From the sequence record MT939492.1: a stretch of DNA of 64,000 nt, one strand, 5' to 3'. The notes under the pieces are model-generated. The model saw only the letters and a program-made list of their open reading frames with translations, was not told the origin of the DNA and did no database searches. Positions 4,733-51,814 of the stretch are shown here, piece after piece. A program made the position numbers and the translations under genes. How positions within the stretch are numbered: position 1 is the stretch's first letter; every line of letters begins with the position of its first letter.

Positions 4733-4761
4733 ACATAGAGGGGAGCCTTCGGGCTCCCCTC
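4733..4761 (+). terminator. CATA-flanked hairpin
   Basis: acata-gaggggagcc-ttcg-ggctcccctc; no U-tract. Confidence 0.6.
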
Positions 4762-4781
4762 GACCACCGTAAAGGAAGATC

Positions 4782-5201
4782 ATGGCTCTTTCCCGTGTTG
4801 CCACCCACCTGCCCGCAGTTCCCAAGCAGGTTACCGAGGCCAAGCCTCTGACCTCTGACCAGATCGAACAGCTCAACGCGCTGATCCTGCGTGGTGCTCC
4901 GTTCGATAAGACCACCTACTCCGCCGTGCTGCCGTGGCTGAAGATGCACTTCAGCGACAAGTACGTGCGCGAAGCAATCGAAAAGCTCATCGGCTACCGT
5001 GTTACCGGTGTGGACATGGGTAAGTCCATCGTCTACAACCTCCCGCACAAGAAGCTGGAGCATTCTGCTATCTACACCAAGGATGGCACGTACGGCCTGC
5101 GTGAACGCGGCACGCGCAAGCGTACCATCGTCTTCGTGCAGATCCATTTCGAGAATGGCCTGCACTACATCACCTCGGTCGTCCCGGCCGACAAGCTGTA
5201 A
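4782..5201 (+). CDS. Hypothetical protein
   Basis: 139 aa ORF with RBS aaggaag. Confidence 0.8.
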   Translation: MALSRVATHLPAVPKQVTEAKPLTSDQIEQLNALILRGAPFDKTTYSAVLPWLKMHFSDKYVREAIEKLIGYRVTGVDMGKSIVYNLPHKKLEHSAIYTKDGTYGLRERGTRKRTIVFVQIHFENGLHYITSVVPADKL

Positions 5202-5227
5202 CCCCAACCTTTTTCTTTGCCGCGAAA

Positions 5228-6349
5228 ATGACCACGAAAACTCCCGAACGTACCCTGGTGGTGGCCATCGTCCACACCCTCACCCAGTTCCAACATCTCC
5301 CGCCGCAGTGGCTCGCCAATGACTGCAGGACGCGTATCGTCGTTACCAACGACATGCGCTACGTGATCGAAAATGACAACACGGTCACCAAGAACTTCGA
5401 CATGGGTATCACGACCGATGATGTCAACTTCATCAGCGGTGGTGGCACGCATTCCAACACCCGTCGCAACAACGCCCATCTGACGGATTACGTCGAGGGC
5501 ATGCATTACCAAGCCCGCGAAACCAAGACGGCGCAGACCCTGCGCATGGCCAGCCTTGCCCGCCTGCTTCAGCTGAAGAACTTCATCAGCCCGCGTATCT
5601 ACAGCACCCAGTTCGCCGACAACCGCAATTCGACGTTCGGTCCGGACATCCGTGGCCGCGTCGTGGTCAAGCCGATCGACGGTGCCCGTGGTATCGGTCA
5701 GATCGTGGCCGACATGGACAAGATCACGCCAGCCGCCCTGATGATCCTGATCAAGGCCGCCAAGGACAAGGACGCCTTCCTGGAAGCGCTTGAAAAGCTC
5801 AAGCCGCATGTCGAGTACCATATCGGTCACGGCGATATCGAGGAAGGTCTGACCTCGCTGGTTGAGCAGGGCTTCTTCGTCCAGCAGCAGGTTCCCAACG
5901 TCACGGCCGAGTTCCGCCTGATCCTGACCCACAAGTCTGAAGTGGCGATGATCTTCAAGCGCAAGCGTGACAACATCCCGCTCTCGGACGATGCCAATGC
6001 CTTCGACTACAAGCAGGCCACCGGCGTCACTGTACTGCTGGAAGAAGCCAAGCCGACCGGCGAGTACGAACTGAATGTCCATCTGGATGAGATCACCACG
6101 TTCCTGAAGGAACTGGACATCCCGCTCAACTCGGTGGACCTGTTCTTCACCGACGACGGCAAGTGGGGTGTGTTCGAATACTGCCCGCAGTTCGGCACCG
6201 AGGGTATCGACCAGAAGATCATGGAACCGTTCCTGCGCGCGCAGATCGAGAACATGCTCGGCATCATCCCCATGCTCAACTACATGACTCCGGAAGATAC
6301 CCACCGCGTGATCCGCGCTCAGGGTGTCGAAACGGCTGAACGCTGCTGA
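5228..6349 (+). CDS. ATP-grasp (RimK-like) ligase
   Basis: Motifs in canonical order: VVVKPIDGARGIGQ, FVQQQV..EFRLI, SVDLF..DGKWGVFEYCPQFG. Confidence 0.75.
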   Translation: MTTKTPERTLVVAIVHTLTQFQHLPPQWLANDCRTRIVVTNDMRYVIENDNTVTKNFDMGITTDDVNFISGGGTHSNTRRNNAHLTDYVEGMHYQARETKTAQTLRMASLARLLQLKNFISPRIYSTQFADNRNSTFGPDIRGRVVVKPIDGARGIGQIVADMDKITPAALMILIKAAKDKDAFLEALEKLKPHVEYHIGHGDIEEGLTSLVEQGFFVQQQVPNVTAEFRLILTHKSEVAMIFKRKRDNIPLSDDANAFDYKQATGVTVLLEEAKPTGEYELNVHLDEITTFLKELDIPLNSVDLFFTDDGKWGVFEYCPQFGTEGIDQKIMEPFLRAQIENMLGIIPMLNYMTPEDTHRVIRAQGVETAERC

Positions 6350-6350
6350 G

Positions 6351-6388
6351 CGGCATAATGGAATGAGGGGGTAAAATCCCTCATTCCA
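6351..6388 (+). terminator. GGCATA-flanked hairpin
   Basis: cggcataa then an 11-bp stem tggaatgaggg/ccctcattcca. Confidence 0.65.
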
Positions 6389-6392
6389 ATCA

Positions 6393-6415
6393 TTTTCAGT
6401 TCTATATAACCTAGG
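6393..6415 (+). promoter_or_regulatory. Putative early promoter, copy 1
   Basis: ttttcagttctatataacctagg; matches the copies at 8962, 19602 and 27054 and resembles the phiKZ early consensus TATATTAC. Confidence 0.6.
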
Positions 6416-6455
6416 TGAAGCTACCCCAATAACCCATCGCAAGGAAGCCATTACC

Positions 6456-6623
6456 ATGAACAAGTTCTTCAAACTTACCAGCGTTGCGCTGGTTGCCCTT
6501 ATGCTGTCTGCTGTCGGTTTCTCGGCCTACGCTGAGATGAAGGCGAATAAGGTCTCTGGTGCTCCGGTTGAATACTCCGGCAGCCAGTTGTCCTTTGCCA
6601 ACGAGATTTCCAAAGCGTTCTAA
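6456..6623 (+). CDS. 55-aa protein with a signal peptide (not in the ORF track)
   Basis: MNKFFKLTSVALVALMLSAVGFSAYA|EMKANK...; RBS aaggaag; AYA resembles a signal peptidase I site. Confidence 0.75.
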   Translation: MNKFFKLTSVALVALMLSAVGFSAYAEMKANKVSGAPVEYSGSQLSFANEISKAF

Positions 6624-6637
6624 ACGGAGAAGTACGA

Positions 6638-6973
6638 ATGCGTCAAGTTGCCTATCGCGGTAAGGTCTACCTCAATTGCCTGACCCTCGCTAACCAGCAC
6701 CGCATTGAAGTGTCTGAAGCGCGTCGCCGCGTGTTGTCCAAAGATCCGCTGTACAGTGACTACCAGTGGGCCGATGAAGATGAGGCCCGCACGTTCACGA
6801 TGGTCCATGTGCCGGGTCGTTACAAAGTGGTCATCGGTCGTCAGCGCTACGAATCGTTCGAGGAGGCCGCCGATGATTACGGCGTCACCAAGAACACCAT
6901 TCGCCGTCGCGTCGAATCGGATTACTTCCCGAACTACTACACCCTGGTTATCGCGCCGCGGTTGCGCGGCTAA
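6638..6973 (+). CDS. Small DNA-binding protein with two NUMOD1/HTH-like repeats
   Basis: Internal repeat V.Y.G..Y...RRRVLS..P.Y versus V.IG..YESFEEAADDYGVTKNTIRRRVES..P.Y. Confidence 0.6.
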   Translation: MRQVAYRGKVYLNCLTLANQHRIEVSEARRRVLSKDPLYSDYQWADEDEARTFTMVHVPGRYKVVIGRQRYESFEEAADDYGVTKNTIRRRVESDYFPNYYTLVIAPRLRG

Positions 6974-6982
6974 CGGAGTATC

Positions 6983-7435: not shown

Positions 7436-7480
7436 CATAGCCCTCCCCGCAAGGGGAGGGTGATCCCCTATCTTTTTCTT
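7435..7480 (+). terminator. CATA-flanked hairpin with U-tract
   Basis: acatag-ccctcccc-gcaa-ggggaggg then tctttttctttt. Confidence 0.7.
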
Positions 7481-7543
7481 TTGTCGGTACGACTATGCTA
7501 TAGCGGGCAAAGGCCTGCTTTGCTCACTCCCAGAGGCACTTTC

Positions 7544-8911: not shown

Positions 8912-8913
8912 CA

Positions 8914-8952
8914 ACATACGAGGAGGGGCATCGCGCCCCTCCTCTATGCCGC
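8914..8952 (+). terminator. CATA...TATGCC-flanked hairpin
   Basis: acatac-gaggaggggc-atcgc-gcccctcctc-tatgccgc. Confidence 0.65.
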
Positions 8953-8961
8953 ATTAAAGGC

Positions 8962-8984
8962 TTTTCAAACCTACATTACCTAGG
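8962..8984 (+). promoter_or_regulatory. Putative early promoter, copy 2
   Basis: ttttcaaacctacattacctagg. Confidence 0.6.
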
Positions 8985-14341: not shown

Positions 14342-15027
14342 GCATCGTAGTCGTCGACTCGGATCTCACTCTGGTCGGTGACTCGCGGCGCAGTACAATT
14401 CGGGCTGGAGTGGCTGTTCGTACCAATGACAGTCACCCCAAGCTGGTCTCGTTGGCTGACAAGGACGTTGTCTTTGAAAGCGCCAAGGTTATCGCAGCTG
14501 CACGCTGTGCTAACGTGAAGACCTCCGAGTTCATGCTCTCCCACCTCATCCAGGGCAAGCTGCGTAAGCTCACCGTCCAGCCTTCCAAGTTCAAGGCGTT
14601 CAACGCCAAGCCCGGCAAGCTGCTGATCCTCACCGTCAATGGTCTCTACTTGGCCTCCTACAAGGGAACCAAGATGACCATCCAGTCGGTGGAAGCTCCG
14701 TTCGCAATGGGGTCTGGTGCCTCCTTTGCAATGAAGCTGCTCAAGCGTACGTCGATGAAAGCGCCGGAAGTGACAGCATTGGTATGCAAGATGTACCCCA
14801 ATGCTGGCGGGCCTCTGATCGGCGTCACCATGAGCCCGGAAGGGAAGAATGGTCCGCTGGTTACGGCCTTCAGTATCCTCAATTCCGACGCTGCAATCAC
14901 CCAAGCCCTGCACAATGCCTGCATTAGCTTCACAGGAGCTGCTGACGGCAAAGACAGGGTCTTGATGGGTGGTAGGCGCAGGAACGACAACACGCAGCTC
15001 TACGAGCGTCTGGGAGTTTCTCCGTGA
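14338..15027 (+). CDS. HslV/proteasome-beta-like Ntn-hydrolase (putative peptidase)
   Basis: N-terminal Ser after Met removal, LVGDSR, Lys at position 34 and FAMGSGASFA match the T1/DSR/K33/GSG pattern. Confidence 0.65.
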   Translation: MSIVVVDSDLTLVGDSRRSTIRAGVAVRTNDSHPKLVSLADKDVVFESAKVIAAARCANVKTSEFMLSHLIQGKLRKLTVQPSKFKAFNAKPGKLLILTVNGLYLASYKGTKMTIQSVEAPFAMGSGASFAMKLLKRTSMKAPEVTALVCKMYPNAGGPLIGVTMSPEGKNGPLVTAFSILNSDAAITQALHNACISFTGAADGKDRVLMGGRRRNDNTQLYERLGVSP

Positions 15028-15689
15028 GTTTGATTTACATCAAGACCGATGGTGGGGCTGCGAAGATCGTGGCCCCGATTCAGTCCATCAACATCAGCGC
15101 ACTGTACCATCGTCGTGAGGACGATGACTACAAGTTCCATGGCGAGGCAATCGTGGCGGCCGGGTATGCGGTGGGTTCGCTGCACATCCCGGAGACGGCG
15201 CTGTTCCATGGTGCCCACGATTTCGCTGAGGCGTTGAGTGAAGGCCTGCTCGACTCAGCTCCTCTGGCAGAGCTGCCCGTGTTCGATAAGGGCAAGCTGC
15301 GCTACAACGCCATCGACTTCTTCATCCTCACCCCTACCAAGTTGTACCGGATTCGTGGTGACTGGGATGGCGAGGGCGAAGTCCAGCACATCGGCACCTA
15401 TGTCAGGCTCGGCGGTATTCACGAGCTGTACATCGGTATGCAGGGCCAGTTCCTGACGATGTTCCCGGCAGACCTGCTGACCGACCCGATGCAGGCTATC
15501 TATCAGACGGCTACGATCATATCGCTCAAGGGTATGGATTGGACTCCGGTCTCCTCCAGTCAGCTGACCGAGCTGAACACCGCTGGTCTGATCTCCGGCA
15601 AGATCGAATGGGAGCACAAGCTGCATCAACGCCACCCGCGTCGCCCCGAGGTGTGGGATATCCTCACCCTGAAGCAGAACAAGGCATAA
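15024..15689 (+). CDS. Hypothetical protein, possibly a degenerate Ntn-fold paralog
   Basis: GTGA coupling; N-terminus SLIYIKTDGGAAKIVA; YIGMQGQF in place of the GSG loop. Confidence 0.6.
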   Translation: MSLIYIKTDGGAAKIVAPIQSINISALYHRREDDDYKFHGEAIVAAGYAVGSLHIPETALFHGAHDFAEALSEGLLDSAPLAELPVFDKGKLRYNAIDFFILTPTKLYRIRGDWDGEGEVQHIGTYVRLGGIHELYIGMQGQFLTMFPADLLTDPMQAIYQTATIISLKGMDWTPVSSSQLTELNTAGLISGKIEWEHKLHQRHPRRPEVWDILTLKQNKA

Positions 15690-15735
15690 ACGGCTGGGAG
15701 GGTGACCTCCCAGCTATGCCGCATCTTTTTTTTTT
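15683..15735 (+). terminator. GGCATA...TATGCC-flanked hairpin with U-tract
   Basis: ggcataaacg-gctgggagg-gtga-cctcccagc-tatgccgcatctttttttttt. Confidence 0.75.
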
Positions 15736-15804
15736 GTCCCCGGAAATGCCGAAACTTATCCTATGTTGACCGGAAGGTCTAACGTCTCCTAACCACCAAA
15801 GGAA

Positions 15805-16926
15805 ATGCACATGGCCATCTTCTTCATGACTGGCTTCGACTTGTTCGGCAGCGCTGATAATTCCTCCAAGAATGGCCCTCTCCTCGGCGCAGGCCTGATC
15901 AATCATCCCAGCAAGCCAACCATCGGTAACACCGCACTCAAGGACCACAGCATCGGTGTGTCCACCCTCGATAGATACATGATGGGTAAGGGTGCCAACC
16001 GGCGTAAGGCCGTAACTTGGTGGGCTGGCGAGCAGCAGATGAATGGCACGGTGGCAGCTACCTTCCCCCTGCCCGTCGGTGTCGCTGGAACCAATGGACA
16101 GCGTACGACATTTGGCTTCCGGCTCAAGAAGCAGAAGATCAATCCGGCCGGAGCGGCACTGCCGAACGTTTGGTACTCCATGTTGAGTATCAATGGTTCC
16201 GTTTATTTGGCTTTCTCGCCCGGAGCCAATACGCTCTATTTCGGAGTCAGTTCCAACGCGTTCCCCTACGTCTTCGTTGACGGTCAGGAGTACTACATCG
16301 AGCTTTCGCTGGTACGCACCGGCACATCCACGCATTCGTTCGAGCTTTACATCGACGGCGTCAAGGTAGGCGCAACCTTCAGCACAAGCCTGACTGGTCC
16401 GTTCACCACCTTCGCGCTCGGCAGCGGCGGCTCCAACTATATCTGGAACATGGCGGTCTCCTATAGCGACGTCTACGTATCCGATACCAAACTCGGCCCG
16501 CAGATGGTGATCAGTCGTCAGCCCACGCTGCAGTTGGTGAAGAATTGGACTCCGTCGGAGGGCGAAGACAACCTCGCCTTGATCACTGGCGCGAACACCA
16601 TGGATGACGGTAAGATCATCAGCTCGCCCGACCTGGGTAACCTGAGTGATCGCTATCGCCTGGAGTTCAATCTGCCGTCGCATCAGAAGGCCTACGCGGC
16701 TTCCCTGTTCGTGCGAGGCAAGCGCGATCAGGCATCCACTCGACGCGTGCTCGCCACCGTATTCGGTCCGGCAGGAACCACGTTGGATCCGGACAAGCGC
16801 GTCAATACGCTGTTCGACACTGCTGCGTTCCGCACGGATCTGCTGTGGTCCACCGAGGATCAGTCTGTGCTGACTCCGGCCAATCTCGCAGGACTGGAGA
16901 TGACGCTGGTCTCCCCGCTGAGCTAA
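15805..16926 (+). CDS. Putative virion structural protein, beta-rich (lectin/ConA-like)
   Basis: MAIFFMTGFD N-terminus; rich in G/S/T and aromatic residues; next to tail-family genes. Confidence 0.5.
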   Translation: MHMAIFFMTGFDLFGSADNSSKNGPLLGAGLINHPSKPTIGNTALKDHSIGVSTLDRYMMGKGANRRKAVTWWAGEQQMNGTVAATFPLPVGVAGTNGQRTTFGFRLKKQKINPAGAALPNVWYSMLSINGSVYLAFSPGANTLYFGVSSNAFPYVFVDGQEYYIELSLVRTGTSTHSFELYIDGVKVGATFSTSLTGPFTTFALGSGGSNYIWNMAVSYSDVYVSDTKLGPQMVISRQPTLQLVKNWTPSEGEDNLALITGANTMDDGKIISSPDLGNLSDRYRLEFNLPSHQKAYAASLFVRGKRDQASTRRVLATVFGPAGTTLDPDKRVNTLFDTAAFRTDLLWSTEDQSVLTPANLAGLEMTLVSPLS

Positions 16927-16936
16927 GGAGAAGACC

Positions 16937-17146
16937 ATGACCGCCAGAGTCTCCTCGATCGGCGCCATGTTCCTTCAGGACGACCAGGGCTCTGCCTTGG
17001 TCAGTTCCTTGGGGGCGATGGTCATGATCAACGATGTCTCACCTGCCCTGGTCAGTAACATTGGTATCCAGATTCTCATGGACGCCCAAGCTGACACAAA
17101 CATTCCGCCCGAGTCCGGAGCGATGCTCCAGATTCAGAAAGTGTAA
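16937..17146 (+). CDS. Small protein with V.S.G...M repeats, probably structural
   Basis: RBS aaggag; repeats ARVSSIGAM / ALVSSLGAM / ALVSNIGIQ. Confidence 0.65.
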   Translation: MTARVSSIGAMFLQDDQGSALVSSLGAMVMINDVSPALVSNIGIQILMDAQADTNIPPESGAMLQIQKV

Positions 17147-17155
17147 GGTGGATTC

Positions 17156-17722
17156 ATGACCGACCTGTCAATTGAAGCGAGGGATATCGTTCTGGGTTTG
17201 ATCAACCAGGACAATGACCTCACTCTCACTCACGAACAGGTGACGCTGGAGCCGCCGGGTGCTGTTACGCCCGGTGAGCCCACCACGGCCATGCGGGTTC
17301 GTTCCAAGCCGACCTTCGACTACAGCGGTAGCGTCAGTCTCTCCTACGAGCGATTGAATCTGCAGCAGGTGATCGACAAGGCTGGCGGGATGAGCATCCT
17401 CACGCCGAAGGACGTCACCTTCGAGCAGTTCATCGGCAGTATCGCTGAGCTGTACGACATCAACTTCACCACGTCTGAAATCGAACCGGTTGGCGTGTTC
17501 GATCTGTCCCAGGGTTACGACCAGCTGAATGTGCAGGTCAAGGCCAAGGGCGGCTCGTACGCCTACTACGGCGAAGGCGTGATCGTGGCTCACTTCGATT
17601 ACATCCCGGTGCCTGTGGATGAGCTGGTGACCGCTGCTGGCAAGGTATCCGCCGCCATTCGCACAGGCCTGTACAACATCTTCTACAACGCCCCTGGTGG
17701 CGGTATTCCCGTCCCCGGCTGA
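17156..17722 (+). CDS. Tail-tip family protein, anchor module only
   Basis: IVLGLINQDN...YERLNL...YDINF...AYYGEG matches the N-terminal module of the 39-48 kb paralogs. Confidence 0.7.
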   Translation: MTDLSIEARDIVLGLINQDNDLTLTHEQVTLEPPGAVTPGEPTTAMRVRSKPTFDYSGSVSLSYERLNLQQVIDKAGGMSILTPKDVTFEQFIGSIAELYDINFTTSEIEPVGVFDLSQGYDQLNVQVKAKGGSYAYYGEGVIVAHFDYIPVPVDELVTAAGKVSAAIRTGLYNIFYNAPGGGIPVPG

Positions 17723-17739
17723 ACAACCAAGGAACCAAG

Positions 17740-18279
17740 ATGAGCACCAATCCCGAAGAAGTCATCGAGCGTCTCAACGCAGCCGCCGAAGATACCGAGG
17801 CCAGCAATCTGCTGCTGCGTCAGTTCATCCAGGGCGGGCAGGACGAAGTGGTGGAGCTGGACGATGGCAACATCCCCACGCTGCGCAACCTGCTGGAAGA
17901 AGTGCGTAACCGCGCTGGTTCGCGTCGCTTCAACATCAACTTCTCCGTCAACGACCTGCTGCGTTACGAGATGAAGGCCGAGCCGCTGTTCGGCGCCATC
18001 ATCGGTGAAGACGTTGTTGTCGATCGTGCGCTCAGCTCGTGCATCTTCCGACTCAACACTGCACCGACGGCTGACATCGCTCTGCAGATCACTCTGGGCG
18101 AGAATCGCTTCGACGTGGTCTTCGCAGCCGGCAGTAAGGATGGCGTGGTTCAGAATGGCAGCGCTGAGCTGATCAACGTACCACGCAGCTCGGCACTGGA
18201 AGTGTCGCTGAACAGCTACGCTCGCGGCGCTGCTCAGATCCGCATCATGATGGAACTGATGATCGTCGAGATCTACTAA
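17740..18279 (+). CDS. Putative tail fibre adaptor/structural protein
   Basis: N-terminus FIQGGQDEVV.LDDG.IPTL resembles fibre head-binding segments. Confidence 0.5.
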   Translation: MSTNPEEVIERLNAAAEDTEASNLLLRQFIQGGQDEVVELDDGNIPTLRNLLEEVRNRAGSRRFNINFSVNDLLRYEMKAEPLFGAIIGEDVVVDRALSSCIFRLNTAPTADIALQITLGENRFDVVFAAGSKDGVVQNGSAELINVPRSSALEVSLNSYARGAAQIRIMMELMIVEIY

Positions 18280-18280
18280 G

Positions 18281-18321
18281 CGGCATAAATAGAGGAGGGG
18301 CCGAAGCCCCTCCTCTATGCC
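18281..18321. terminator. Bidirectional GGCATA...TATGCC hairpin
   Basis: cggcataaat-agaggaggggc-cgaa-gcccctcctct-atgcc between convergent genes; no U-tract. Confidence 0.7.
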
Positions 18322-18337
18322 CCCATGCTGTTCGCGA

Positions 18338-19492
18338 TTAGCTCGCGGCAGCTTCGGTGACGTGGACTTCGGCAGCCGCCAGCACGCGCGGAGCGATCGA
18401 GTCCAGGCGACGGGCCTGCACGGCGATGTAGAAGTCGCCCAGCAGTGCGCCGGTTTCGCTGGTGGCAACGCCCGGGAAGGCGTCGGTGTAGAACGAAGCG
18501 CGCTGGATTTCCTGGATCAGGTCACCGGTGGCCGAGAAGTAGGCGTCGGTGATGTCCACACCGGCAGCTTCGTCCTTCAGCGACAGCGAGCCGTCCTGGT
18601 TCTTCACGGCGACCAGGTGCAGGCCGGCGGTGCGGTCGGCGGTCTGGATGAACACTTCGACGGCGTACAGGTCGAGCACGGCAGCGCCGTGGGTCTTGTC
18701 CAGCAGGCCGATCGAGAACGGGATGTTCCAGTCGCCGGCAGCCGGCACGGTCACGTTGTACTTCGGCAGGGCGCCATCGACCGGTGCGAAGGTGTTGATG
18801 TCCTTCCAGATACGAGCGCCGACGGCCACTTCCAGCTCGCCGTTGCTGTTGACGACCAGGTGGTCCGACGGGTTGCCGGTGCCGGTGAACAGCTTGCCAT
18901 CTTCGGTCTGGAAGGCTTCGTTGACTTCCACGTCCTGCACGACCTTCGGCTTGATCAGGCCCGAGACGATGCCGGCCGGGTACTTCAGGCCGTTCAGCAC
19001 GGTCTTGACGATCACCGAGGACAGCGGCGGCTTGCCGTCGGTCAGGATGATCTTCAGCTCGCCGATCCAGGCGAACGAAGTCGCCTTGGTCTTCAGGGTG
19101 TAGTCCAGCGGGTACTCGCCGGTCGGCAGGGCTTCGAAGACGACGTCGTCCTCGTCCAGACCCAGGCCGAAGGTGTCGTTGATCTCGGTGACCAGTTCGC
19201 TGGAGTTGGTCAGGCCAACCGAGCGCAGTTCGAGTTCCGGCAGGCCGGCGTCGGTGAACAGCTTCTGCAGGTCCAGACGCTGGTAGGCGGCGGTGACTTC
19301 GCCACCGAAGCGGCTTTCGGCCTTGGCGGTGATCAGGACGGTCGAGTTGACCTCTTCGCCCTGGCTGGCATCAGCCACCGGGTTGGCGAAGTCGACGTCG
19401 TCGAAGGTCAGCGGACCATAGATCATTTCCGCCGCGTTCTCTTCGTTCACGAGCGCGAGCAGGCGATCCTTGCTCTTGTCATTGAGCGACAT
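18338..19492 (-). CDS. Tail-tip/fibre family protein (anchor plus variable C-domain)
   Basis: LLALVNEEN..YQRLDL..LNGLKYP..NGELEV; RBS gagg upstream. Confidence 0.75.
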   Translation of the reverse strand: MSLNDKSKDRLLALVNEENAAEMIYGPLTFDDVDFANPVADASQGEEVNSTVLITAKAESRFGGEVTAAYQRLDLQKLFTDAGLPELELRSVGLTNSSELVTEINDTFGLGLDEDDVVFEALPTGEYPLDYTLKTKATSFAWIGELKIILTDGKPPLSSVIVKTVLNGLKYPAGIVSGLIKPKVVQDVEVNEAFQTEDGKLFTGTGNPSDHLVVNSNGELEVAVGARIWKDINTFAPVDGALPKYNVTVPAAGDWNIPFSIGLLDKTHGAAVLDLYAVEVFIQTADRTAGLHLVAVKNQDGSLSLKDEAAGVDITDAYFSATGDLIQEIQRASFYTDAFPGVATSETGALLGDFYIAVQARRLDSIAPRVLAAAEVHVTEAAAS

Positions 19493-19601
19493 TTTCAATA
19501 CCTCTAGCTAGTAAGGTGGGTGCGCATTGGTAGGCAAGGTCCGGTGAAGTGGAGCTGCCCACATAAGATAGATTCGGTTCCAAAGAACCCGATTCCAAAA
19601 A

Positions 19602-19624
19602 CTTTCACCTATACATCACCTAGT
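19602..19624 (+). promoter_or_regulatory. Putative early promoter, copy 3
   Basis: ctttcacctatacatcacctagt preceded by an A-tract. Confidence 0.6.
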
Positions 19625-19722
19625 TGAAGTAGTACAACCAATCCGCCAAGATTATCCATCTATCGACCATTCCCTCCAAAGGAAAGGTTGATAGATGGGT
19701 AGTTTTAGGTGTCTTCTTTTTT
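19625..19722 (+). ncRNA. Candidate small RNA or structured leader
   Basis: 16-bp stem 19653-68/19686-701 with two G-U pairs, then a U-rich run; directly after the promoter motif. Confidence 0.35.
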
Positions 19723-19748
19723 CGTTGTAACAGTAAGGGAGAAACATA

Positions 19749-21212
19749 GTGACGTATCGTCCACGTAAACATCGTGATCCGATCAAGCCTGCTCCGAAGA
19801 AGGCTGCTGCAAAGAAGACCGCTCCGCCGAAAGCTGCACCTCGCAAGAGCCAGGTACAGAAGGAAGCAGAGCGGTTGTTGATCGAGACGGACGCTGCCAA
19901 GAACACGCGCTACACCAATCAGGTCATCCATGAACTTTTCGCCAAGTTCACTCCCCGGGTTCGTGACCTGACCTTCGTCCACCAGCACGCACCTTTCGAA
20001 TCCAACGTCTACAACGGCTTGGGCGTGGGTGAGAGCTTCGTGCACAGCCTGATCCAACTGGCATGGTCCATCTACCCCGAGACGCTGCGCAGCAGCTATC
20101 AGGGGAAGAACGTCGAGATGCGAGCTCCTCAGGGCTGGCTACCGATGGAGTTCCTGCCGCTGGCCGAGTCCACCAAGTACACCGGTGGTATCGTCATGCT
20201 GACCATGGATCGTCGCGACAGCCGTCCTGACATCTTTGACGAACTGCTGACCCTGCCGATGATCATGGGAGTCAGAGCAGTTAGCTACACCAATCTGCTG
20301 CTGGCGCTGAATCTCCACGAGCTGAGCCAGGACACTGACCGCAGCGTGGAAGAGCAGGATCTGCTGGAACGCTTCTGCGGTTACTACATGGGTCGCATCG
20401 CAGCCTTCGGGTTGATCTTCAGGTGCGGCTTCATCAGCATGTCCGACGAACAGAACCTGGACGCTGAAGAGGCCATGTTCAAGCACGTCGACGAACGCTT
20501 CCAGACGATGCTGAACATCGCAGACGCCAAGGACGCAAGGAACAACCCCGACCTGGAAAGGTTCGAGGAAGCACTGATCCAGACGACCGGCTATGGTCAG
20601 ATCGGCTCCTATGTTCGCATGGGGTTCATCGACACCATGGCCTTCTTCGACGACCTGACCACCAAGCACCCCGAGCTGCTCACCGAGCCGCTCGATTCAC
20701 TGACCCACCCCGGCTCCAAAATCAACCTCACGACCGAAGATGACGGATTGGTCGTACGAGTGAACTACAAGGCCACTCCCGGCCAACGCAAGACTGTGAC
20801 CGAATTCGTTCGACCCGTCGACGATGCTGTCGAACTCGATTTTGTCCCAGAGAAAGTCACCCTCACCAAGCCCAAGACCACCAAGGAAAAGACCATGTCC
20901 CAGAGCACCGCTACCGCCCGCACCGTCACCCGTCCGGCCCGTTCGATCCCGCTGAGCCAGGGCGCTGGCCGTCCCGCCAAGGACTACCAGAAGGCCACCT
21001 TCGCTGAAGACGCCAAGGACTTCGGCGCCCGCTCCCTGGCCCGCTCCGAAACCCAGCTGCGCCGTGGTGTCCGCACCGTGAAAAACGTCGCGCTGGAAAC
21101 CGTCCACAACAAGAAGCGCCTGGCCATCATCGGCGGCGTGGCTGTGGCAGTTGTCGGCGGCGTGATGCTGTACAACTACCTGTCCGGGGACAACAACCTC
21201 GGCGATGCGTAA
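19749..21212 (+). CDS. Hypothetical protein with a Lys/Ala/Pro-rich N-terminus and a C-terminal TM helix
   Basis: GTG with RBS aaggga; KPAPKKAAAKK; LAIIGGVAVAVVGGVMLY. Confidence 0.75.
   Translation: MTYRPRKHRDPIKPAPKKAAAKKTAPPKAAPRKSQVQKEAERLLIETDAAKNTRYTNQVIHELFAKFTPRVRDLTFVHQHAPFESNVYNGLGVGESFVHSLIQLAWSIYPETLRSSYQGKNVEMRAPQGWLPMEFLPLAESTKYTGGIVMLTMDRRDSRPDIFDELLTLPMIMGVRAVSYTNLLLALNLHELSQDTDRSVEEQDLLERFCGYYMGRIAAFGLIFRCGFISMSDEQNLDAEEAMFKHVDERFQTMLNIADAKDARNNPDLERFEEALIQTTGYGQIGSYVRMGFIDTMAFFDDLTTKHPELLTEPLDSLTHPGSKINLTTEDDGLVVRVNYKATPGQRKTVTEFVRPVDDAVELDFVPEKVTLTKPKTTKEKTMSQSTATARTVTRPARSIPLSQGAGRPAKDYQKATFAEDAKDFGARSLARSETQLRRGVRTVKNVALETVHNKKRLAIIGGVAVAVVGGVMLYNYLSGDNNLGDA
20895..21212 (+). 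CDS. In-frame nested 105-aa membrane-anchored protein
   Basis: Strong RBS aaggaaaagacc-ATG inside 19749..21212. Confidence 0.55.
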   Translation: MSQSTATARTVTRPARSIPLSQGAGRPAKDYQKATFAEDAKDFGARSLARSETQLRRGVRTVKNVALETVHNKKRLAIIGGVAVAVVGGVMLYNYLSGDNNLGDA

Positions 21213-21229
21213 GCAGCCGGCCTGAAGCT

Positions 21230-21257
21230 AGTGGGGAGTAGTTCTCTACTCCCCACT
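21230..21257 (+). terminator. Hairpin
   Basis: agtggggagtag-ttct-ctactccccact, 12-bp stem after stop 21212. Confidence 0.6.
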
Positions 21258-21282
21258 CCTATTGGACGGAGGAAAGAGACGA

Positions 21283-21723
21283 ATGTCCGTCGTGATAAAA
21301 CAACCCGCCATGCGCGATTTCTTCACCCGCTTTTTTGAGAGCATCGATCAGTTGGCCAAGAACATCGGCTTCCTGTTCATGCATTTCGTCCTTCGTGGCA
21401 AGGTCGGCATGTTCGACTACGACTTCGAAGAAAACGAAGAAGACGGCCTGATCCACATTCGTGGTAACGGCATTGAACCCAACCGCTACATCAAGTTCCG
21501 CATCGAGAACCGCTGGATGGCTGGCAAGAGCAAGTTGCCCCCATCGGCAGTTCGTGACATCTTCTCCCGCATCATCGGCTCCGGCCTGAACACCACCGGT
21601 TTCCTCTTCAAGGGTTACTGGTACACACCCTACGGCGCACCCACGCGTCAACTAGGCGGTGACCACGCATTCAAAGACTACCGTCTCTGGAACAAGGACA
21701 CTGCCGCCCAACTATCCCAGTAA
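21283..21723 (+). CDS. Hypothetical protein
   Basis: ATG21283 with RBS ggagg. Confidence 0.75.
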   Translation: MSVVIKQPAMRDFFTRFFESIDQLAKNIGFLFMHFVLRGKVGMFDYDFEENEEDGLIHIRGNGIEPNRYIKFRIENRWMAGKSKLPPSAVRDIFSRIIGSGLNTTGFLFKGYWYTPYGAPTRQLGGDHAFKDYRLWNKDTAAQLSQ

Positions 21724-22234: not shown

Positions 22235-22294
22235 CGGCATAGGCTCCAGCTACCCGCGAGGGTAGCTGGAGCTATGACCTAACTCTTTTTTTTT
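22235..22294. terminator. Bidirectional GGCATA...TATG hairpin with U-tract
   Basis: cggcatag-gctccagctaccc-gcga-gggtagctggagc-tatgac...ttttttttt. Confidence 0.75.
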
Positions 22295-24407: not shown

Positions 24408-24614
24408 TAAGGCCTGACAAGAGCATTAGGCTTTTCCGCCTATTCTCCACTTTGCGCTTGATTTCCTGTATGGTATGGACAGGTTATCCCCGCAGGTGGA
24501 GGCAGTCCTAGGACAGGGTCGGGCATGTTGCAGCTCCCTATGAAGATATTCTATGGGAAAAGTGGCCGCCCCTCGCCCGATCCTATTCACACCAAACCGT
24601 CAAGGAACCCAGAA

Positions 24615-26996: not shown

Positions 26997-27041
26997 CAGA
27001 GGGGTGGCTTCGGCCACCCCTCTGGTTTTTCCTTTATGCCG
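26997..27041 (+). terminator. Capsid gene terminator with TATGCC tail
   Basis: cagaggggtggc-ttcg-gccacccctctg-gttttt...tatgccg. Confidence 0.8.
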
Positions 27042-27053
27042 TCAAGCAAAAAA

Positions 27054-28254: not shown

Positions 28255-29877
28255 ATGGCGGACAAACATTACTCCAGGCTGCTCAGGGAAGTCACTCCAC
28301 GACTCAACCCTGACATCGCAGACGGTCTGGCAACCAAGCACGTGCCCTATGTTGACAAGATGGTGGACGATATCTTCCGCACCGCAGCTGCCGGTTTTCC
28401 GGACGGGCTGAAGTACGACGGATTCGCCCGCTGTACGCCGAGGGAGACCTTCAGGGAGATCACCAAGCGGGTCAACAGCCAAAGGACTTGGGAAACAGCA
28501 AAGACCAGTGCACATCTGAACAAGTACATGTTCAGCTACATGGGTCAGCCACTCGATCCGAGGTACATCTATCTGCCCAACGTCATGGACGGTGGTCTGA
28601 TGTATCTGCGTGGGTCGTTGTTCGCAGTGGCGCCGGTTTTGGCGGACCGGGTATTCAGCATCAACGCAACATCAATCTTTATCCCATTGCAAGGCGCCAA
28701 GCTCACTTTCGAGCGAATGTATTACACCTTCATGCGTGACGGCATTCAGGTTGACGCGCACTTGATCCATGCCTCGTTGTACAATCACACGGCGGAGGGC
28801 AAAGCAGAACTGGCCCGCCAGCCGATCCGTGGTGACTCGACGATGGCACATTACCTGTTCTGTCGCTATGGCGTGGAAGAGACCTTCAAGAACTACGGCG
28901 GCACCAACATCGTCGTGGGGAACTCGGCTTGGATCAACGAAGAAGCCTACCCGGCCAAAGACTGGGTGATCTTCTCCTCAGCGCAGGTCAAGCCACAAGG
29001 TGTTCGTCTGAAGATCGGTCACCCGGTCTCGGATATCCGCATGGCCATCCCTCGGGAGAACTATTCGGACGCAGTGCACATCCTGGTTGGCAGTTTCTTC
29101 TATGCCATTGACCATTTCCCCGAACGGTTCCCGCTGGAGTTCGCGCTCGACATCACCCGATGGCAGCTCGCACTCGGCATCTTCCTGTTCGGCGAAGGAC
29201 AGAGCGAGGGTAAGATCCTGGAGCGCCTCGACGACCACCTTGCGTCGCTCGATACCTACATGGATCGCAACTCCCGCAAGAAGCTCCTGGAAGATGGAGT
29301 GATCGTGGAGACGGTCTATGACCTGTTCTTCCACATGATCGACACCTTCCACAGCCGACTGACCGGTAATGCCAAGGACATTGCCAGCATGTACGGCAAG
29401 CAGTTCGTGATCCTGAGGTACATCGTCTTCGATATCAACAAGGCGATCTACAACTTCAGCTTCAACCTGCGTAACTCCAAGAAGCCGATCTTGAATCCCA
29501 AGGAGATCAACGCCGAGCTTCGGCGTACTCTGCGGACTGACTTGATCTTCCAGCTCAATCAGCCCACGCACAACGAAGTTACTTCGGTAACGTGCCCTGG
29601 TGACAACAAGGTCTTCAAGATCACCTCGCGTCTGGTGGCCCAGACCAGTACGACAGGTGGTCGCGGTGGTAACAAGGGTAGCATGAGCGACCCTGCACGA
29701 CAGCTGCACTCCTCCATGGCCGAGGTGGGTAGTTTCCGTAACATGTCTAAGAGTGATCCCACTGGTCGGGACCGCGCAAATGTGTACGTGCGCCTGTCCC
29801 ACGATGGACTGGTGGAAAGGTCACCCGCACTTCGTCCGATCCTGGATGATGTGCAACAGAGAATCCAACGGCGTTAA
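28255..29877 (+). CDS. Non-virion RNA polymerase beta subunit (phiKZ gp123-like)
   Basis: 540 aa; YLPNV..GG...LRGS and HSSMAEVGS...KSDPTGR motifs; position downstream of the capsid gene as in phiKZ. Confidence 0.72.
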   Translation: MADKHYSRLLREVTPRLNPDIADGLATKHVPYVDKMVDDIFRTAAAGFPDGLKYDGFARCTPRETFREITKRVNSQRTWETAKTSAHLNKYMFSYMGQPLDPRYIYLPNVMDGGLMYLRGSLFAVAPVLADRVFSINATSIFIPLQGAKLTFERMYYTFMRDGIQVDAHLIHASLYNHTAEGKAELARQPIRGDSTMAHYLFCRYGVEETFKNYGGTNIVVGNSAWINEEAYPAKDWVIFSSAQVKPQGVRLKIGHPVSDIRMAIPRENYSDAVHILVGSFFYAIDHFPERFPLEFALDITRWQLALGIFLFGEGQSEGKILERLDDHLASLDTYMDRNSRKKLLEDGVIVETVYDLFFHMIDTFHSRLTGNAKDIASMYGKQFVILRYIVFDINKAIYNFSFNLRNSKKPILNPKEINAELRRTLRTDLIFQLNQPTHNEVTSVTCPGDNKVFKITSRLVAQTSTTGGRGGNKGSMSDPARQLHSSMAEVGSFRNMSKSDPTGRDRANVYVRLSHDGLVERSPALRPILDDVQQRIQRR

Positions 29878-32126: not shown

Positions 32127-32146
32127 TGGGGAGGGAAACCTCCCCA
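32127..32146 (+). terminator. Hairpin (GAAA loop)
   Basis: tggggagg-gaaa-cctcccca after stop 32119. Confidence 0.6.
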
Positions 32147-32324: not shown

Positions 32325-32375
32325 GCATACCCCCCGCCCCGTTCTGCGACGGTGGCGGGGGATTGCTTTTATGCC
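32325..32375 (+). promoter_or_regulatory. GCATA...TATGCC-flanked hairpin upstream of 32397
   Basis: gcatac-cccccgcc-ccgt-tctgcg-acgg-t-ggcggggg-attgctt-ttatgcc. Confidence 0.5.
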
Positions 32376-33416: not shown

Positions 33417-33506
33417 AGCCCACTCCTATCCGGGGGGTGGGCTCTTTTTTACCGTCTTCTTTTTTTTTGTCTTCAGGGCATAGAGGGAGGCCCCGAAGGG
33501 CCTCCC
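33417..33506. terminator. Two hairpins between convergent genes
   Basis: agcccactcc/ggggtgggct plus U-tract for the + gene; gggcatagagggaggccc-cgaa-gggcctccc for the - gene. Confidence 0.7.
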
Positions 33507-39391: not shown

Positions 39392-39431
39392 CGGCATAAG
39401 GGGAGGGGCTTTCGCCCCTCCCTCTATGTCC
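39392..39431. terminator. Bidirectional GGCATA...TATG hairpin
   Basis: cggcataag-gggaggggc-tttc-gcccctccc-tctatgtcc; no U-tract on either strand. Confidence 0.7.
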
Positions 39432-48585: not shown

Positions 48586-48642
48586 TACCCCGAAAACATC
48601 AGCGCATCTGGTGCTTTCATTTCCCTTTAACGGAGTCTTTGC

Positions 48643-49725
48643 ATGCACAGCCAGCCTCCCTTCCCGCGCGGTGGACATCCGTCCCCCGGGAACTTCTCGG
48701 ATCAAGACAGTTGGAGTCCGGCCCCGCCGATTCATGGACGTCGGCCGCCTGCACCTGGTCCCCACGATCACCACGACCACGGTCATTCGCACCCGCGTCC
48801 TGATCCCCGGCATTACGAGCATTTCCCGCACCAGCATCGCCAGCCTGAAGCATGGCAGTGCGCTGAGCCGATCTACCCGTACAACAAGCCGGGTAAGCAC
48901 GTACTGGTCGATCTGATCAACCGTGCCAACGAGACCGACTTCGCGCCCGATCAGCTGGAGATCAGCGCGCCTGCTGCATTGGGCAATACGCTGACGCAGG
49001 TGCACATCACCCCGACCCACAAGACCGGGTGGTGCAGCAGCGAGACCTTCACTTATCATCGCATGATAATGGAGGCGTATCTGGGCAAGACCCACATCCA
49101 CTTGCATGTGGACGCCCGGATGACCAAGGAGAGTGTCGCCCAAGCCATGCGTGATCGCTACCGCATCTGGCTGGACATGGAAGACTTCGACGTGGACTTC
49201 TCCAACTGCCCGCCGAGCTGGCTGCAGCGTGGGCATTTCCTGGCTCGCCTTCGCTTCCGTCCGAACTGCCTGATCTGGATCGGCGCGATGGAAGTGATCC
49301 TGATCCCGGACAATCGCCTCAGTGCGATGATCTGCGTGACTGATCTCTCCGGCTTCATCTATCCAGACCATCTGGGTGGTCAGGGTCGCAAGCAGCTGGC
49401 CGAATCGTACTACCAGGATCTGGAAGGCACCATCATTTACCAGAACCTGCTGAAGTACCGTGTCGGCGAACCGGTGCGTACTCACGACGGCAAATGGCGT
49501 GACGGTACTCGCCTGACTGGCGACTTCTGGATCTCCTCTCCGCAGGAAGTCGAGTTCAACGTATCCGGTGCTCGCATCGTCTACAACGGTCGCAACGAAG
49601 GCCCGTGGCACTGCGGCTGCAACGACTACAGTCATGTGCTGGTGATCGAGCTGAGCCACCTGTGCAAGAACCTGCGCGGCAAGCTGGTCATCCCCTACGA
49701 CGTGCGGCGCGAACAGCCCTACTGA
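48643..49725 (+). CDS. Virion structural protein with an anchor module and a His/Pro-rich N-terminus
   Basis: KPGKHVLVDLINRAN..YHR..LSGFIYP; N-terminus PHDHHDHGHSHP. Confidence 0.75.
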   Translation: MHSQPPFPRGGHPSPGNFSDQDSWSPAPPIHGRRPPAPGPHDHHDHGHSHPRPDPRHYEHFPHQHRQPEAWQCAEPIYPYNKPGKHVLVDLINRANETDFAPDQLEISAPAALGNTLTQVHITPTHKTGWCSSETFTYHRMIMEAYLGKTHIHLHVDARMTKESVAQAMRDRYRIWLDMEDFDVDFSNCPPSWLQRGHFLARLRFRPNCLIWIGAMEVILIPDNRLSAMICVTDLSGFIYPDHLGGQGRKQLAESYYQDLEGTIIYQNLLKYRVGEPVRTHDGKWRDGTRLTGDFWISSPQEVEFNVSGARIVYNGRNEGPWHCGCNDYSHVLVIELSHLCKNLRGKLVIPYDVRREQPY

Positions 49726-49801
49726 TCGACGTGTAGAGAATTACCTCCAGCACGCTATCGTATAGCGCGTCTTACGTCAAAACGAACAAAGGTATTCCCA
49801 C

Positions 49802-50662
49802 GTGAAAATCATTACCCGTACTGGCTACGGCTGCCTGCGTCAGACCGAGCTGCTGATCGGCAAGCCCTACAAGGCACTGCCCAACAGCACGCTCAACGAG
49901 AAGTTCGAAGTCCAGGCCAACGTCCTGCCCGAAGCTGGCAAGATCCCGTACCTGGGCTTCTACTGCATCGGCCAGGGTGGTCACCGCAACGAGACCGGTG
50001 CCGACGGCTTCCCGCTGACCAGCCCGATCGACCATCGTCCCACCGACGGCGGCCTGTTCCGCTACCTGCCGTTCGTGCTGCGTGAGCTGACCAACGACCT
50101 GGACAGCGCCGCTCGTTCGCGCTATGCCATGCGCAAGATCATCCAGGTGGATGGCCGCAACTATGTGGCCTACTACCTGAAGAAGATCCCGATGGACTCG
50201 GTGTCCCCGGACATCTACTACAACCGCGTGGTGGATGGTCAGGTCACCACGACGCCGTTCCGTCCGGACAACAGCAACCTCAATCCGACCCCGCCGGAAA
50301 TCCCGAACACCGGTACTGTCACCACCTCCGGTGACTACCTGTCCGTTTCGGCGATCCTGCCGCTGGACTTCACCGCCAATGACGTGGCCGAGCTGGTCAA
50401 CGCCATCCGCATCCTGTTCAAGGACGAGCGCTACGCGGTGATCTCCGAGATCGGCATGGTGACTGCTGCCATCAAGCTGGTCACCGGCCCGGGCCCGGGC
50501 AACACCACGATCCAGTACGAAGAAGCTGTGGCTGCACAGATCGCCGCCCACATGACCGGTCACTACCCGGTCGGTTTCACCAACATGGGCTTCAACCTGA
50601 AGGTGAACCTGGGCGCGACCGAGCCGATGTTCAAGCCGTCGGCCGTTACCACCGGCAACTGA
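49802..50662 (+). CDS. Conserved virion (baseplate wedge-like) protein
   Basis: GTG start; NSTLNEKF, IG.GGH, YLPFVLR, VAYYLKK and ISEIGMV are typical of this phiKZ-like structural family. Confidence 0.6.
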   Translation: MKIITRTGYGCLRQTELLIGKPYKALPNSTLNEKFEVQANVLPEAGKIPYLGFYCIGQGGHRNETGADGFPLTSPIDHRPTDGGLFRYLPFVLRELTNDLDSAARSRYAMRKIIQVDGRNYVAYYLKKIPMDSVSPDIYYNRVVDGQVTTTPFRPDNSNLNPTPPEIPNTGTVTTSGDYLSVSAILPLDFTANDVAELVNAIRILFKDERYAVISEIGMVTAAIKLVTGPGPGNTTIQYEEAVAAQIAAHMTGHYPVGFTNMGFNLKVNLGATEPMFKPSAVTTGN

Positions 50663-50678
50663 TCCAGCGAGGTACGTT

Positions 50679-51299
50679 ATGCTGGTGATGCCGGATCGAG
50701 GGAGAGAATACCGGGTGCTCGGAGTCGACCCCGGTGGTTTCTGTCTGGGTACAGCAGTCTTGGAGATCAACTTTGAGACCTCTTCCGTTGAGGTCATCCA
50801 TGCTGATACTGTCCATGCCAGCAATGCCGATGTCCGATACCCCGTGTTGCAGGAAGTGCACGGGGGTCGGGTTCCTCGACATCGAATGCTGGAGGACGAG
50901 ATTGCTTGCCTCCTGCGCACATTCGAACCCAACTCGGTGATTTCCGAATCGCCATTTATGCGCAAGTTTGCCAAGGTCTTCCATGCGCTGATCGAATGTG
51001 TTTACCTTCTCCGTTTCGCACTGCGGCAGTTCGATGAAAACATCAAGCTGTTGGCAGTGGATCCTCCATCGGTGAAGATGGCTGTGGGCGGAACTGGTAA
51101 GAGCGATAAGGACGCAATGAAGCGTCTGGTTTGCAAAGTACCTAATCTTACCTTTGCCGAAAGCGTCGATTACGATTCTCTGGACGAACACTCCGTGGAC
51201 GCAATCGCCATCGCCTACTGTCATTGCGCATACCTGCTTGGTTGCGCTAGAGAGGTTAAACCCAATGAAAATGCGCGACGCCGTAAAGGTCGTCGGTGA
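50679..51299 (+). CDS. ruvC: RuvC-like Holliday junction resolvase
   Basis: VLGVDPG, ISESPF, VKMAVGGTGKSDK and DEHSVDAIAIAY (all four acidic catalytic motifs). Confidence 0.9.
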   Translation: MLVMPDRGREYRVLGVDPGGFCLGTAVLEINFETSSVEVIHADTVHASNADVRYPVLQEVHGGRVPRHRMLEDEIACLLRTFEPNSVISESPFMRKFAKVFHALIECVYLLRFALRQFDENIKLLAVDPPSVKMAVGGTGKSDKDAMKRLVCKVPNLTFAESVDYDSLDEHSVDAIAIAYCHCAYLLGCAREVKPNENARRRKGRR

Positions 51300-51741
51300 A
51301 CTGACCCTGGCGGACTTCCCCTGGGGCCAGCGCATTGTCGACTACACCAACGATTTCCTGGAGGAGGCCGAGGTTTCCTTGGCCACCACGGGCGTTGAGC
51401 TGTTGGCTGAGATCAGCAAGCTGCCTGTGGAAAAGCAGGAAACGCTGCTGGCTCTGTCGTTGAAGATTCGCAAGCCGGAAGCCAAGCCGGTCAAGAAGGC
51501 GAAGAAGAAACACGCCGGACTGATCGAGTCGCTGGTGAAGAATCCGCGCTTGCTGATGTTGATGCTGGTCCTCACCGCATCTGTCGTCATCGCTTTCCTG
51601 GTCATCTTGGCCGTCAACGCCGCTGCCGTGAAGAATGGTGGCGCCCCTGATCAAGGACTGATCGACGCGGTGTTTAAGTTCCTGATTGAACTTGTCAAGG
51701 CATTCACGGGCGCCGGAGCAAATCCCACCCCCGCGATGTAG
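51265..51741 (+). CDS. Membrane protein (one TM helix plus an amphipathic helix)
   Basis: ATG51265 with RBS gagg; LLMLMLVLTASVVIAFLVILAV. Confidence 0.7.
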   Translation: MKMRDAVKVVGELTLADFPWGQRIVDYTNDFLEEAEVSLATTGVELLAEISKLPVEKQETLLALSLKIRKPEAKPVKKAKKKHAGLIESLVKNPRLLMLMLVLTASVVIAFLVILAVNAAAVKNGGAPDQGLIDAVFKFLIELVKAFTGAGANPTPAM

Positions 51742-51774
51742 CGCACCTTAGTCTAGCTGCGCGATAAAGATTCA

Positions 51775-51814
51775 GGTCATATCGCCCCTCCCCGAAGGGA
51801 GGGGCTTTATGCCG
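51775..51814. terminator. Bidirectional CATA...TATGCC hairpin
   Basis: ggtcatatc-gcccctccc-cgaa-gggaggggc-tttatgccg. Confidence 0.7.

Follow-up and report, generated by a model that had tools for sequence, protein, structure and literature searches.

The 64,000-nt stretch of DNA analyzed here (the window) corresponds to bases 62001-126000 of Xanthomonas phage Xoo-sp14 (MT939492.1; 100% identity by megablast). It carries a family of GC-rich intergenic hairpins flanked by the word CATA or GGCATA on the upstream side and by TATG or TATGCC on the downstream side. These elements are, in our opinion, very probably the transcription terminators of a phiKZ-like jumbo phage, i.e., a nucleus-forming phage with RNA polymerases (RNAPs) of its own. 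This reading is supported by the position of the elements relative to genes, by selection at the level of RNA, and by the match of their tails to terminators mapped in the phages phiKZ and 201phi2-1; the same evidence supports the stop signal specific to the phage RNAP that was among the functions offered by the original prediction. It should be noted that this kind of terminator has already been published for phiKZ and 201phi2-1. What is new here is that, in a genome of 58% GC, the conserved tail is the plain word TATGCC(GT) with no U-run. The analysis also adds that the invariance of TATG is confined to the sense side, and that both the word and its register are common to the tail and the late promoter core.

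Xoo-sp14 (232,104 bp) is a phiKZ-like phage encoding its own split multisubunit RNAPs, though a distant one, since three of its genes (Xoosp14_174, 211, and 237) are annotated as "RNA polymerase beta subunit" and the plus strand of the window encodes, at 28255..29877, a clear homolog of gp123, the beta-like subunit of the phiKZ non-virion RNAP (PDB 7ogp_E, E 7.6e-93). The distance is evident from the capsid protein, which shares no more than 47% identity with its counterpart in any other deposited phage; phiKZ was absent among the capsid matches listed, the weakest of which had about 29% identity. Phages of the phiKZ type do not depend on the host RNAP, because phiKZ infection is rifampicin-resistant (PMC4666361). 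Genome-wide counts were made on the Xoo-sp14 genome reassembled from six annotated stretches. Counts of gene junctions were taken from the annotation tables (251 genes); separate gene calling gave 233 genes and miscalled, for example, the junctions at 30299 and 209475. Conservation was assessed on 41 elements aligned three ways between Xoo-sp14 and two near-complete relatives from IMG/VR, UViG_3300028187_000371 and UViG_3300011217_000001 (230 and 234 kb), which are about 85% identical to Xoo-sp14 and to one another.

The flank words are strongly associated with intergenic hairpins. Across the 232-kb genome, TATG follows 29 of 64 perfect-stem intergenic hairpins at a distance of up to 9 nt, vs a background of 4.2% (P 4e-23), and CATA precedes 36 of them, vs a background of 2.4% (P 3e-41), while TATG accompanies 1 and CATA 3 of 44 comparable intragenic hairpins. 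More than half of the copies of TATGCC/GGCATA (54 of 86) fall inside the intergenic 10% of the genome. The bare pattern CATA-N14-40-TATG occurs about twice as often as expected by chance (11 observed vs 5.5 expected), and TATGCCGT by itself is found 4 times vs 1.2 expected. The signal is therefore the association with hairpins: the flank words matter only beside them. About 50-55 such elements are present across the genome, and the original observation is confirmed. Rfam gave no matches in the window at the gathering score. From a MAFFT alignment of 39 paralogous units RNAalifold recovered 3 pairs only, because the alignment was not structure-aware; structure was judged from direct hairpin and flank statistics together with the orthologous alignments of the three genomes.

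The first line of evidence is the placement of the elements. Their stems start at a median of about 9 nt past a stop codon, and in four cases the stop codon itself lies inside GGCATAA or GGCATAG. An element is found at 18 of the 20 annotated convergent junctions, the other two of which involve doubtful open reading frames of 114-144 nt. The hexamer TATGCC/GGCATA is present in none of the 19 divergent spacers. The elements thus sit at gene 3' ends and convergent junctions, and the hexamers are missing from the spacers that must hold promoters, namely the divergent ones. This is how stop signals, and not start signals, are distributed. As in phiKZ-type terminators, GC-rich hairpins with short loops lie just past a gene or between convergent genes. 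In a 500-nt divergent spacer devoid of annotated genes, ATATGCG follows a UUCG-looped hairpin (genome positions ~195,940-195,975); this may be the sign of a non-coding RNA or of a small gene that escaped annotation.

These counts also bear on the proposal, made in the original prediction, of a terminate-and-reinitiate unit, in which the TATG beside the hairpin would end one transcript and, as a late promoter, start the next. The premise of that proposal is correct: TATG with G as +1 is the core of the phiKZ late promoter (PMC4666361). Moreover, conserved hairpin-free TATG is found upstream of Xoo-sp14 late genes, the phiKZ start P049 lies at a second TATG 5 nt past a terminator tail, according to the portion of the phiKZ start table that covers P008-P066, and in Xoo-sp14 a tandem tail, TATGCC-GC-TATGCC, follows one hairpin (genome positions 14693-14706) and may represent a rare true terminator-promoter pair. 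The lack of the hexamer in all 19 divergent spacers nevertheless speaks against reinitiation as the function of the family, and a start at the 18 occupied convergent junctions would yield antisense RNA only. Within the same portion of the phiKZ table, none of the starts falls on a TATG next to a hairpin; those nearby are placed 5-25 nt further on. In addition, promoter-like TATG precedes a purine, whereas the tail reads TATGCC. Thus, the elements lack the presence in divergent regions that characterizes a phiKZ-type late promoter, their TATG would probably not serve as a start, and we regard reinitiation as very improbable.

The second line of evidence is the constraint on the hairpins. In the three-genome alignments, 6.8% of stem columns are variable, as compared with 42% of loop columns, 25% of other intergenic columns, and 26% of coding columns. 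Sixteen compensatory pair changes were found in the stems, and the loops, while variable, remain within stable RNA tetraloop classes. Where genes are co-directional, 23 loops read as UUCG or GNRA on the sense strand and 1 does so on the antisense strand; between convergent genes, the two strands are split 5 to 7. The structure therefore acts in RNA, on the sense transcript, a conclusion drawn from freely varying loops, compensating stems, and the 23:1 sense bias of UUCG and GNRA loops.

An action at the level of DNA was considered as well, with the elements as palindromic repeats resembling repetitive extragenic palindromic (REP) sequences or miniature inverted-repeat transposable elements (MITEs), as cruciforms, or as sites for dimeric proteins, and any effect on transcription secondary. 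The elements do form perfect palindromes with the conserved outer half-sites GGCATA and TATGCC, and their loops flip between relatives, a DNA-level event typical of palindromes. However, the tetraloop type tracks the transcribed strand, the elements are tied to gene 3' ends, and co-directional contexts show an unequal constraint on the two half-sites. Their spacing also ranges from 24 to 40 nt, and the stems (6-14 bp) differ between copies, so the elements are not copies of one mobile sequence. Near-identical copies, independence of orientation, and constraint at the DNA level only, which would define a REP or MITE family, were not found, and this explanation can, in our view, be given very little credence. 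The flips themselves deserve mention: from one relative to another, loops at convergent junctions are often replaced by their reverse complement (TTTC to GAAA, GCGA to TCGC) with stems unchanged, as at the genome elements 4873, 84243, 143059, 146930, 180843, and 194697, and these are small palindrome-mediated inversions.

The third line of evidence is the tail. A matrix built from 51 sense-oriented units gives the sense-strand consensus yTATGCCGT, in which the four positions after TATG are C in 38, C in 41, G in 30, and T in 34 units; in 37 of the 51 the tail is separated from the stem by 0-2 nt. None of 104 TATG columns is variable, vs 25% of other intergenic columns (P 4e-13) and vs the 6.8% of stems (P 0.002), and the CC that follows is variable in 10% of columns. 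Sense-side TATG is unchanged in all 43 elements, a count that takes in CATA at convergent junctions as the TATG of the opposing gene. Upstream CATA of co-directional elements, by comparison, is altered in 6 of 17 (P 2.5e-4 vs sense-side TATG). GGCATA and TATGCC are mutual reverse complements, and RNAfold therefore pairs both as a lower stem (predicted hairpin stability -17 to -35 kcal/mol). Because sense TATG is invariant while co-directional CATA changes, TATG does more than pair with CATA. The alignments thus point to a unit consisting of a hairpin and then TATG along the direction of transcription, with the palindromic form being two such units placed back to back.

Consistent with the earlier remark that the elements often have no U-tract, 38 of 43 sense-oriented TATG tails lack one, i.e., have fewer than six T in the first 9 nt and no run of seven or more T within 40 nt. 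The U-tract directly past the stem that is the mark of a canonical intrinsic terminator is thus missing. This disagrees with a further explanation, that the elements are ordinary intrinsic terminators of the bacterial type whose flanks arise from base composition or from leftover A- and U-tracts. About 10 elements do have a run of T9-11 located 5-13 nt past the stem, and the tails of AT-rich phiKZ look U-rich, and ARNold called them intrinsic terminators (PMC10914365). Yet TATG is absolutely conserved while adjacent positions drift, and the G in fourth position and the CC after it do not resemble what a U-tract would leave behind; we find this explanation hardly tenable. Reinitiation, a DNA palindrome, and a U-tract terminator each fail a test made here. 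With regard to the T9-11 runs, 12 are found on the plus strand and 1 on the minus strand, 5-13 nt past hairpins and usually before G(T/C)C, and they are kept in the relatives (in the window, for instance, at 15726-15735, 22286-22294, and 33460-33468). They are too distant from the stem for a canonical U-tract and might serve either as a second stop signal or as one addressed to the other polymerase.

The reading of the elements as terminators draws further support from phiKZ, in which 133 transcription termination sites were mapped by Oxford Nanopore Technologies (ONT)-cappable-seq (Putzeys et al. 2024, PMC10914365). Most of the intrinsic terminators predicted in phiKZ, 61 regions, carry the motif 5'-BCCYCCCC-HWWD-GGGRRGG-BYTTATKYYGT-3' (PMC10914365). 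In Xoo-sp14, too, a tail of the YTTATKYYGT type is found directly past the stem, and TATGCCGT is a GC-rich instance of TTATKYYGT. The entire 30-nt phiKZ consensus matches the window at 51786-51815 with 2 mismatches, where 0.00 matches are expected by chance. The two phages share a GC-rich polypurine/polypyrimidine hairpin with a loop of 4-5 nt, a tail (T)TATG-Y-Y-G-T beginning 0-2 nt past the stem, a location after genes with a two-way form between convergent genes, and the upstream (G)CATA mirror. We placed the phiKZ termination sites (bioRxiv supplement, Table S4) on the phiKZ genome; in 8 of the 9 terminators with a hairpin and TATG in its first 50 kb, the mapped 3' end falls between -1 and +2 nt relative to the G of TATG. 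The phages differ in host genus and GC content (37% in phiKZ vs 58% in Xoo-sp14), and their capsids are distantly related. Unlike the phiKZ tail, the TATGCC tail of Xoo-sp14 is not U-rich and would be missed by predictors of the ARNold type. The 3' ends are mapped in phiKZ, while the Xoo-sp14 elements are known from their sequence alone.

The (G)CATA-hairpin-(T)TATG layout, present in the first 50 kb of phiKZ, was also found in 42-kb stretches of LucasX, RSL2, and FLC9. The 42 kb around the capsid gene of Goslar contain 2 strong hairpins only and no motif; the family may therefore include phages without the motif. In 201phi2-1, a motif A has been described as similar to the phiKZ motif, and a co-occurring motif B makes the hairpin longer; a reporter trap, which used the host RNAP in uninfected cells, showed stronger termination where both motifs were present (PMC11512511). 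This lengthening parallels the optional CATA/TATG lower stem of Xoo-sp14, and we infer that motif B corresponds to the upstream CATA flank. Bacterial bidirectional intrinsic terminators likewise use one palindromic hairpin for converging transcripts, and their complementary flanks can extend the stem. Those flanks, however, are A and U runs, in place of the words GGCATA and TATGCC.

The probable mode of action may be outlined as follows. The functional unit would be strand-specific and would consist of a GC-rich hairpin in the RNA, with a UUCG or GNRA tetraloop at its tip, and of the yTATGCCGT tail 0-2 nt past the stem, and the phage RNAP would halt at or directly past TATG. At convergent pairs, two units would use a single hairpin, which would produce the mirror GGCATA on the opposite side. 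In co-directional rows, the upstream CATA would be optional, lengthening the stem by pairing with UAUG. The tail may act as a pause signal, the source of which would be either the beta-lobe pocket that reads TATG late promoters or a generic pause with a pyrimidine at -1 and G at +1.

The first of these two sources leads to a suggestion that we advance tentatively, namely that TATG has a dual role, the late start core bound by gp123 also halting the elongating RNAP 0-2 nt past a nascent hairpin. In a structure published in 2026, a pocket under the beta-lobe of the phiKZ core subunit gp123 holds non-template TATG at -3..+1 (PMC12809450). Of the 14 pocket residues named there, mapped by hand from the 7ogp_E alignment, the Xoo-sp14 homolog keeps 8 (Ser144, Phe151, Lys158, Asn186, His331, Ser334, Asn398, and Gln466) and has conservative replacements at 2 (His185 to Tyr and Tyr406 to Phe). 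The tail and the phiKZ late promoter core share the same non-template tetranucleotide, and the phiKZ 3' ends give the register of initiation (T -1, G +1). They differ in that the Xoo-sp14 element stands in a stop context, while known late promoters have no preceding hairpin. The choice between start and stop might then, just as tentatively, be made by context, that is, by the upstream hairpin and by CC rather than a purine downstream. As to the second source, the elemental pause of multisubunit RNAPs reportedly has the consensus G-10, Y-1, G+1, said to have been described by Larson et al. and by Vvedenskaya et al. in 2014; we know of no test of this consensus on the two-barrel RNAPs of phages. 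The likeness consists in a pyrimidine at the RNA 3' end with G incoming (UAU|G) and a G-rich stem upstream, and such a pause would leave the conserved TA and CC unexplained.

Candidate start sites fit the same comparison. Hairpin-free TATG followed by a purine precedes the capsid, sheath, and other late genes of Xoo-sp14 and is conserved in all three genomes (window positions 24466-24480 and ~24545-24552; stretch L005:13132-13140; L002:1805-1812), and these sites are likely late promoters of the phiKZ type. A separate motif, TTTCA(a/g)(a/c)C-CTAyAyyAyC, was noticed upstream of genes in about 11 clear genome copies, e.g., at window positions 6384-6411 and 8953-8980, often 20-40 nt past a terminator tail. 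It resembles the phiKZ early promoter (TTCAAAC...TATATTAC), and its copies are likely early promoters of the Xoo-sp14 virion RNAP.

Several points weigh against termination by this mechanism. The conservation counts come from three related genomes and hence are not independent events. The 5' arm is mostly purine-rich in Xoo-sp14 vs pyrimidine-rich in phiKZ. None of the 20 sequencing runs with Xoo-sp14-like DNA is recorded as RNA, and all are represented by contigs, which carry no information on RNA ends; the contigs over window positions 15500-21400 are pieces of related strains only and say nothing about RNA ends either. Against the pocket version in particular, 4 of the 14 named residues differ in the Xoo-sp14 homolog. 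The phiKZ motif, moreover, is also found past early genes, which are transcribed by the virion RNAP and would not be covered by the gp123 pocket of the non-virion RNAP alone. Finally, the phiKZ 3' ends were obtained by an ONT method, with which a terminated transcript cannot be told from one trimmed or processed back to a hairpin.

This last point is shared by the remaining explanation, RNA processing or 3'-end protection, which had also been named among the possible functions. The polymerase would read through, and the transcript would then be cut by an endonuclease in the UAUGCC tail or trimmed by exonucleases back to the hairpin, which would then stabilize the mRNA upstream of it. The hairpins are indeed very stable and have stabilizing tetraloops, and a conserved single-stranded tail could serve as the cleavage site. 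Yet the CCGT of the tail is conserved despite being at or beyond the mapped phiKZ 3' ends, which better fits recognition during transcription than in the mature RNA. Phages of Pseudomonas, Xanthomonas, Ralstonia, and Burkholderia also retain the motif, and cloned 201phi2-1 elements reduce a downstream reporter in uninfected cells, as terminators do (PMC11512511). We therefore consider processing unlikely as the function of the elements.

If the elements are terminators, some 50-55 ends of transcription units can be placed by sequence alone in Xoo-sp14 and in its uncultured relatives. Lacking a U-tract, these ends escape standard terminator finders. A relative of high GC content also makes it possible to separate a "U-rich tail" from a "specific TATGCC tail": its tails are GC-rich and devoid of U-richness, and TATG is kept in 43 of 43 elements, which is how Xoo-sp14 would expose a dual role of the word. 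The analysis raises the idea of a pause specified by TATG in the promoter register, and purified phiKZ non-virion RNAP and structures exist. Were the dual role true, initiation and termination in nucleus-forming jumbo phages would be written in the same code. Compact two-way terminators that require no U-tract are, in addition, possible insulators for use in GC-rich hosts.

Within the window, a GC-rich hairpin was found at each of the 12 sites listed in the original prediction. The flanks described there were confirmed: both are present at seven sites (8914, 15683, 18281, 22235, 32325, 39392, and 51775), upstream CATA only at three (4733, 6351, and 7435), and downstream TATGCCGT only at 26997, 10 nt past the stem, while the flank at 33477 is the tail of a minus-strand element. 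The CATA words at 4733 and 7435 are probably there by chance, since they are not conserved in the relatives. The three convergent elements singled out earlier (18281, 39392, and 51775) have both flanks and no U-run after them, as had been stated.

Four of these elements are two-way and lie between convergent genes. The one between genes 113 and 114 consists of GGCATA at 18282-18287, a hairpin at 18289-18318, and TATGCC at 18316-18321, the first three bases of which form the last stem pairs; it is invariant across the relatives, and the neighboring spacer is variable. Between genes 117 and 118, GGCATA (22236-22241) is followed by a hairpin (22243-22272), TATG (22273-22276, in TATGAC), and T9 (22286-22294). 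Read on the minus strand, this element gives TATGCCGT, and its loop changes from GCGA to TCGC to GCAG in the relatives. The element between genes 128 and 129 has GGCATA at 39393-39398, a hairpin at 39401-39422, and TATG at 39425-39428 (in TATGTC). The element between genes 140 and 141 has CATA at 51778-51781, a hairpin at 51784-51805, and TATGCCGT at 51808-51815.

Three plus-strand elements have both flanks. The first comprises CATA at 8915-8918, a hairpin at 8920-8944, and TATGCCG at 8945-8951, and both relatives are the same except for one loop base. The second comprises GGCATA at 15683-15688, a hairpin with a GNRA loop at 15693-15714, TATGCC at 15715-15720, and T10 at 15726-15735; its loop changes from GTGA to GCGA to GAAA in the relatives, with fixed flanks. 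In the third, CATA at 32326-32329 precedes a long imperfect hairpin (32331-32362), and TATGCC is found at 32370-32375, so that TATG is 8 nt off the stem. Past the major capsid gene, also on the plus strand, a hairpin with a UUCG loop (26997-27024) is followed by GTTTTTCCT and then by TATGCCGT at 27035-27042. Its stem changes in a compensatory manner in both relatives, from GGGGTGGC/GCCACCCC to GGGGAGGC/GCCTCCCC and to GGAGGAGC/GCTCCTCC. The minus-strand element after gene 126 has its hairpin at 33485-33506, with the UUCG loop on the minus strand, and its TATGCC tail appears as GGCATA at 33477-33482 of the plus strand.

The other three plus-strand sites have no TATG tail. After the stop codon of Xoosp14_92, CATA (4734-4737) adjoins a hairpin with a UUCG loop (4738-4761); this CATA is missing from both relatives, and the site is a plain hairpin. 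GGCATA at 6352-6357, the CATA of which is kept in the relatives, precedes a hairpin at 6359-6388. CATA at 7436-7439 precedes a hairpin with a GCAA loop at 7440-7461, from which a T-rich stretch begins 12 nt downstream. Strong intergenic hairpins with neither flank are located at 2502-2526, 21230-21257, 32127-32146, 33417-33443, and 63527-63547. Those at 2502 and 33417 have T4-6 directly after the stem and look like ordinary intrinsic terminators; Xoo-sp14 therefore uses at least two terminator styles.

Beyond the two near-complete relatives, there is a fragment of 95% identity, and marine, wastewater, and soil metagenome runs contain Xoo-sp14-like DNA. One of the IMG/VR relatives is classed as having direct terminal repeats. 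The deposited Xoo-sp14 record starts with T10 and ends with T10 immediately past a GGCATA hairpin; this homopolymer, and not a physical end, is probably where the linear record was opened.

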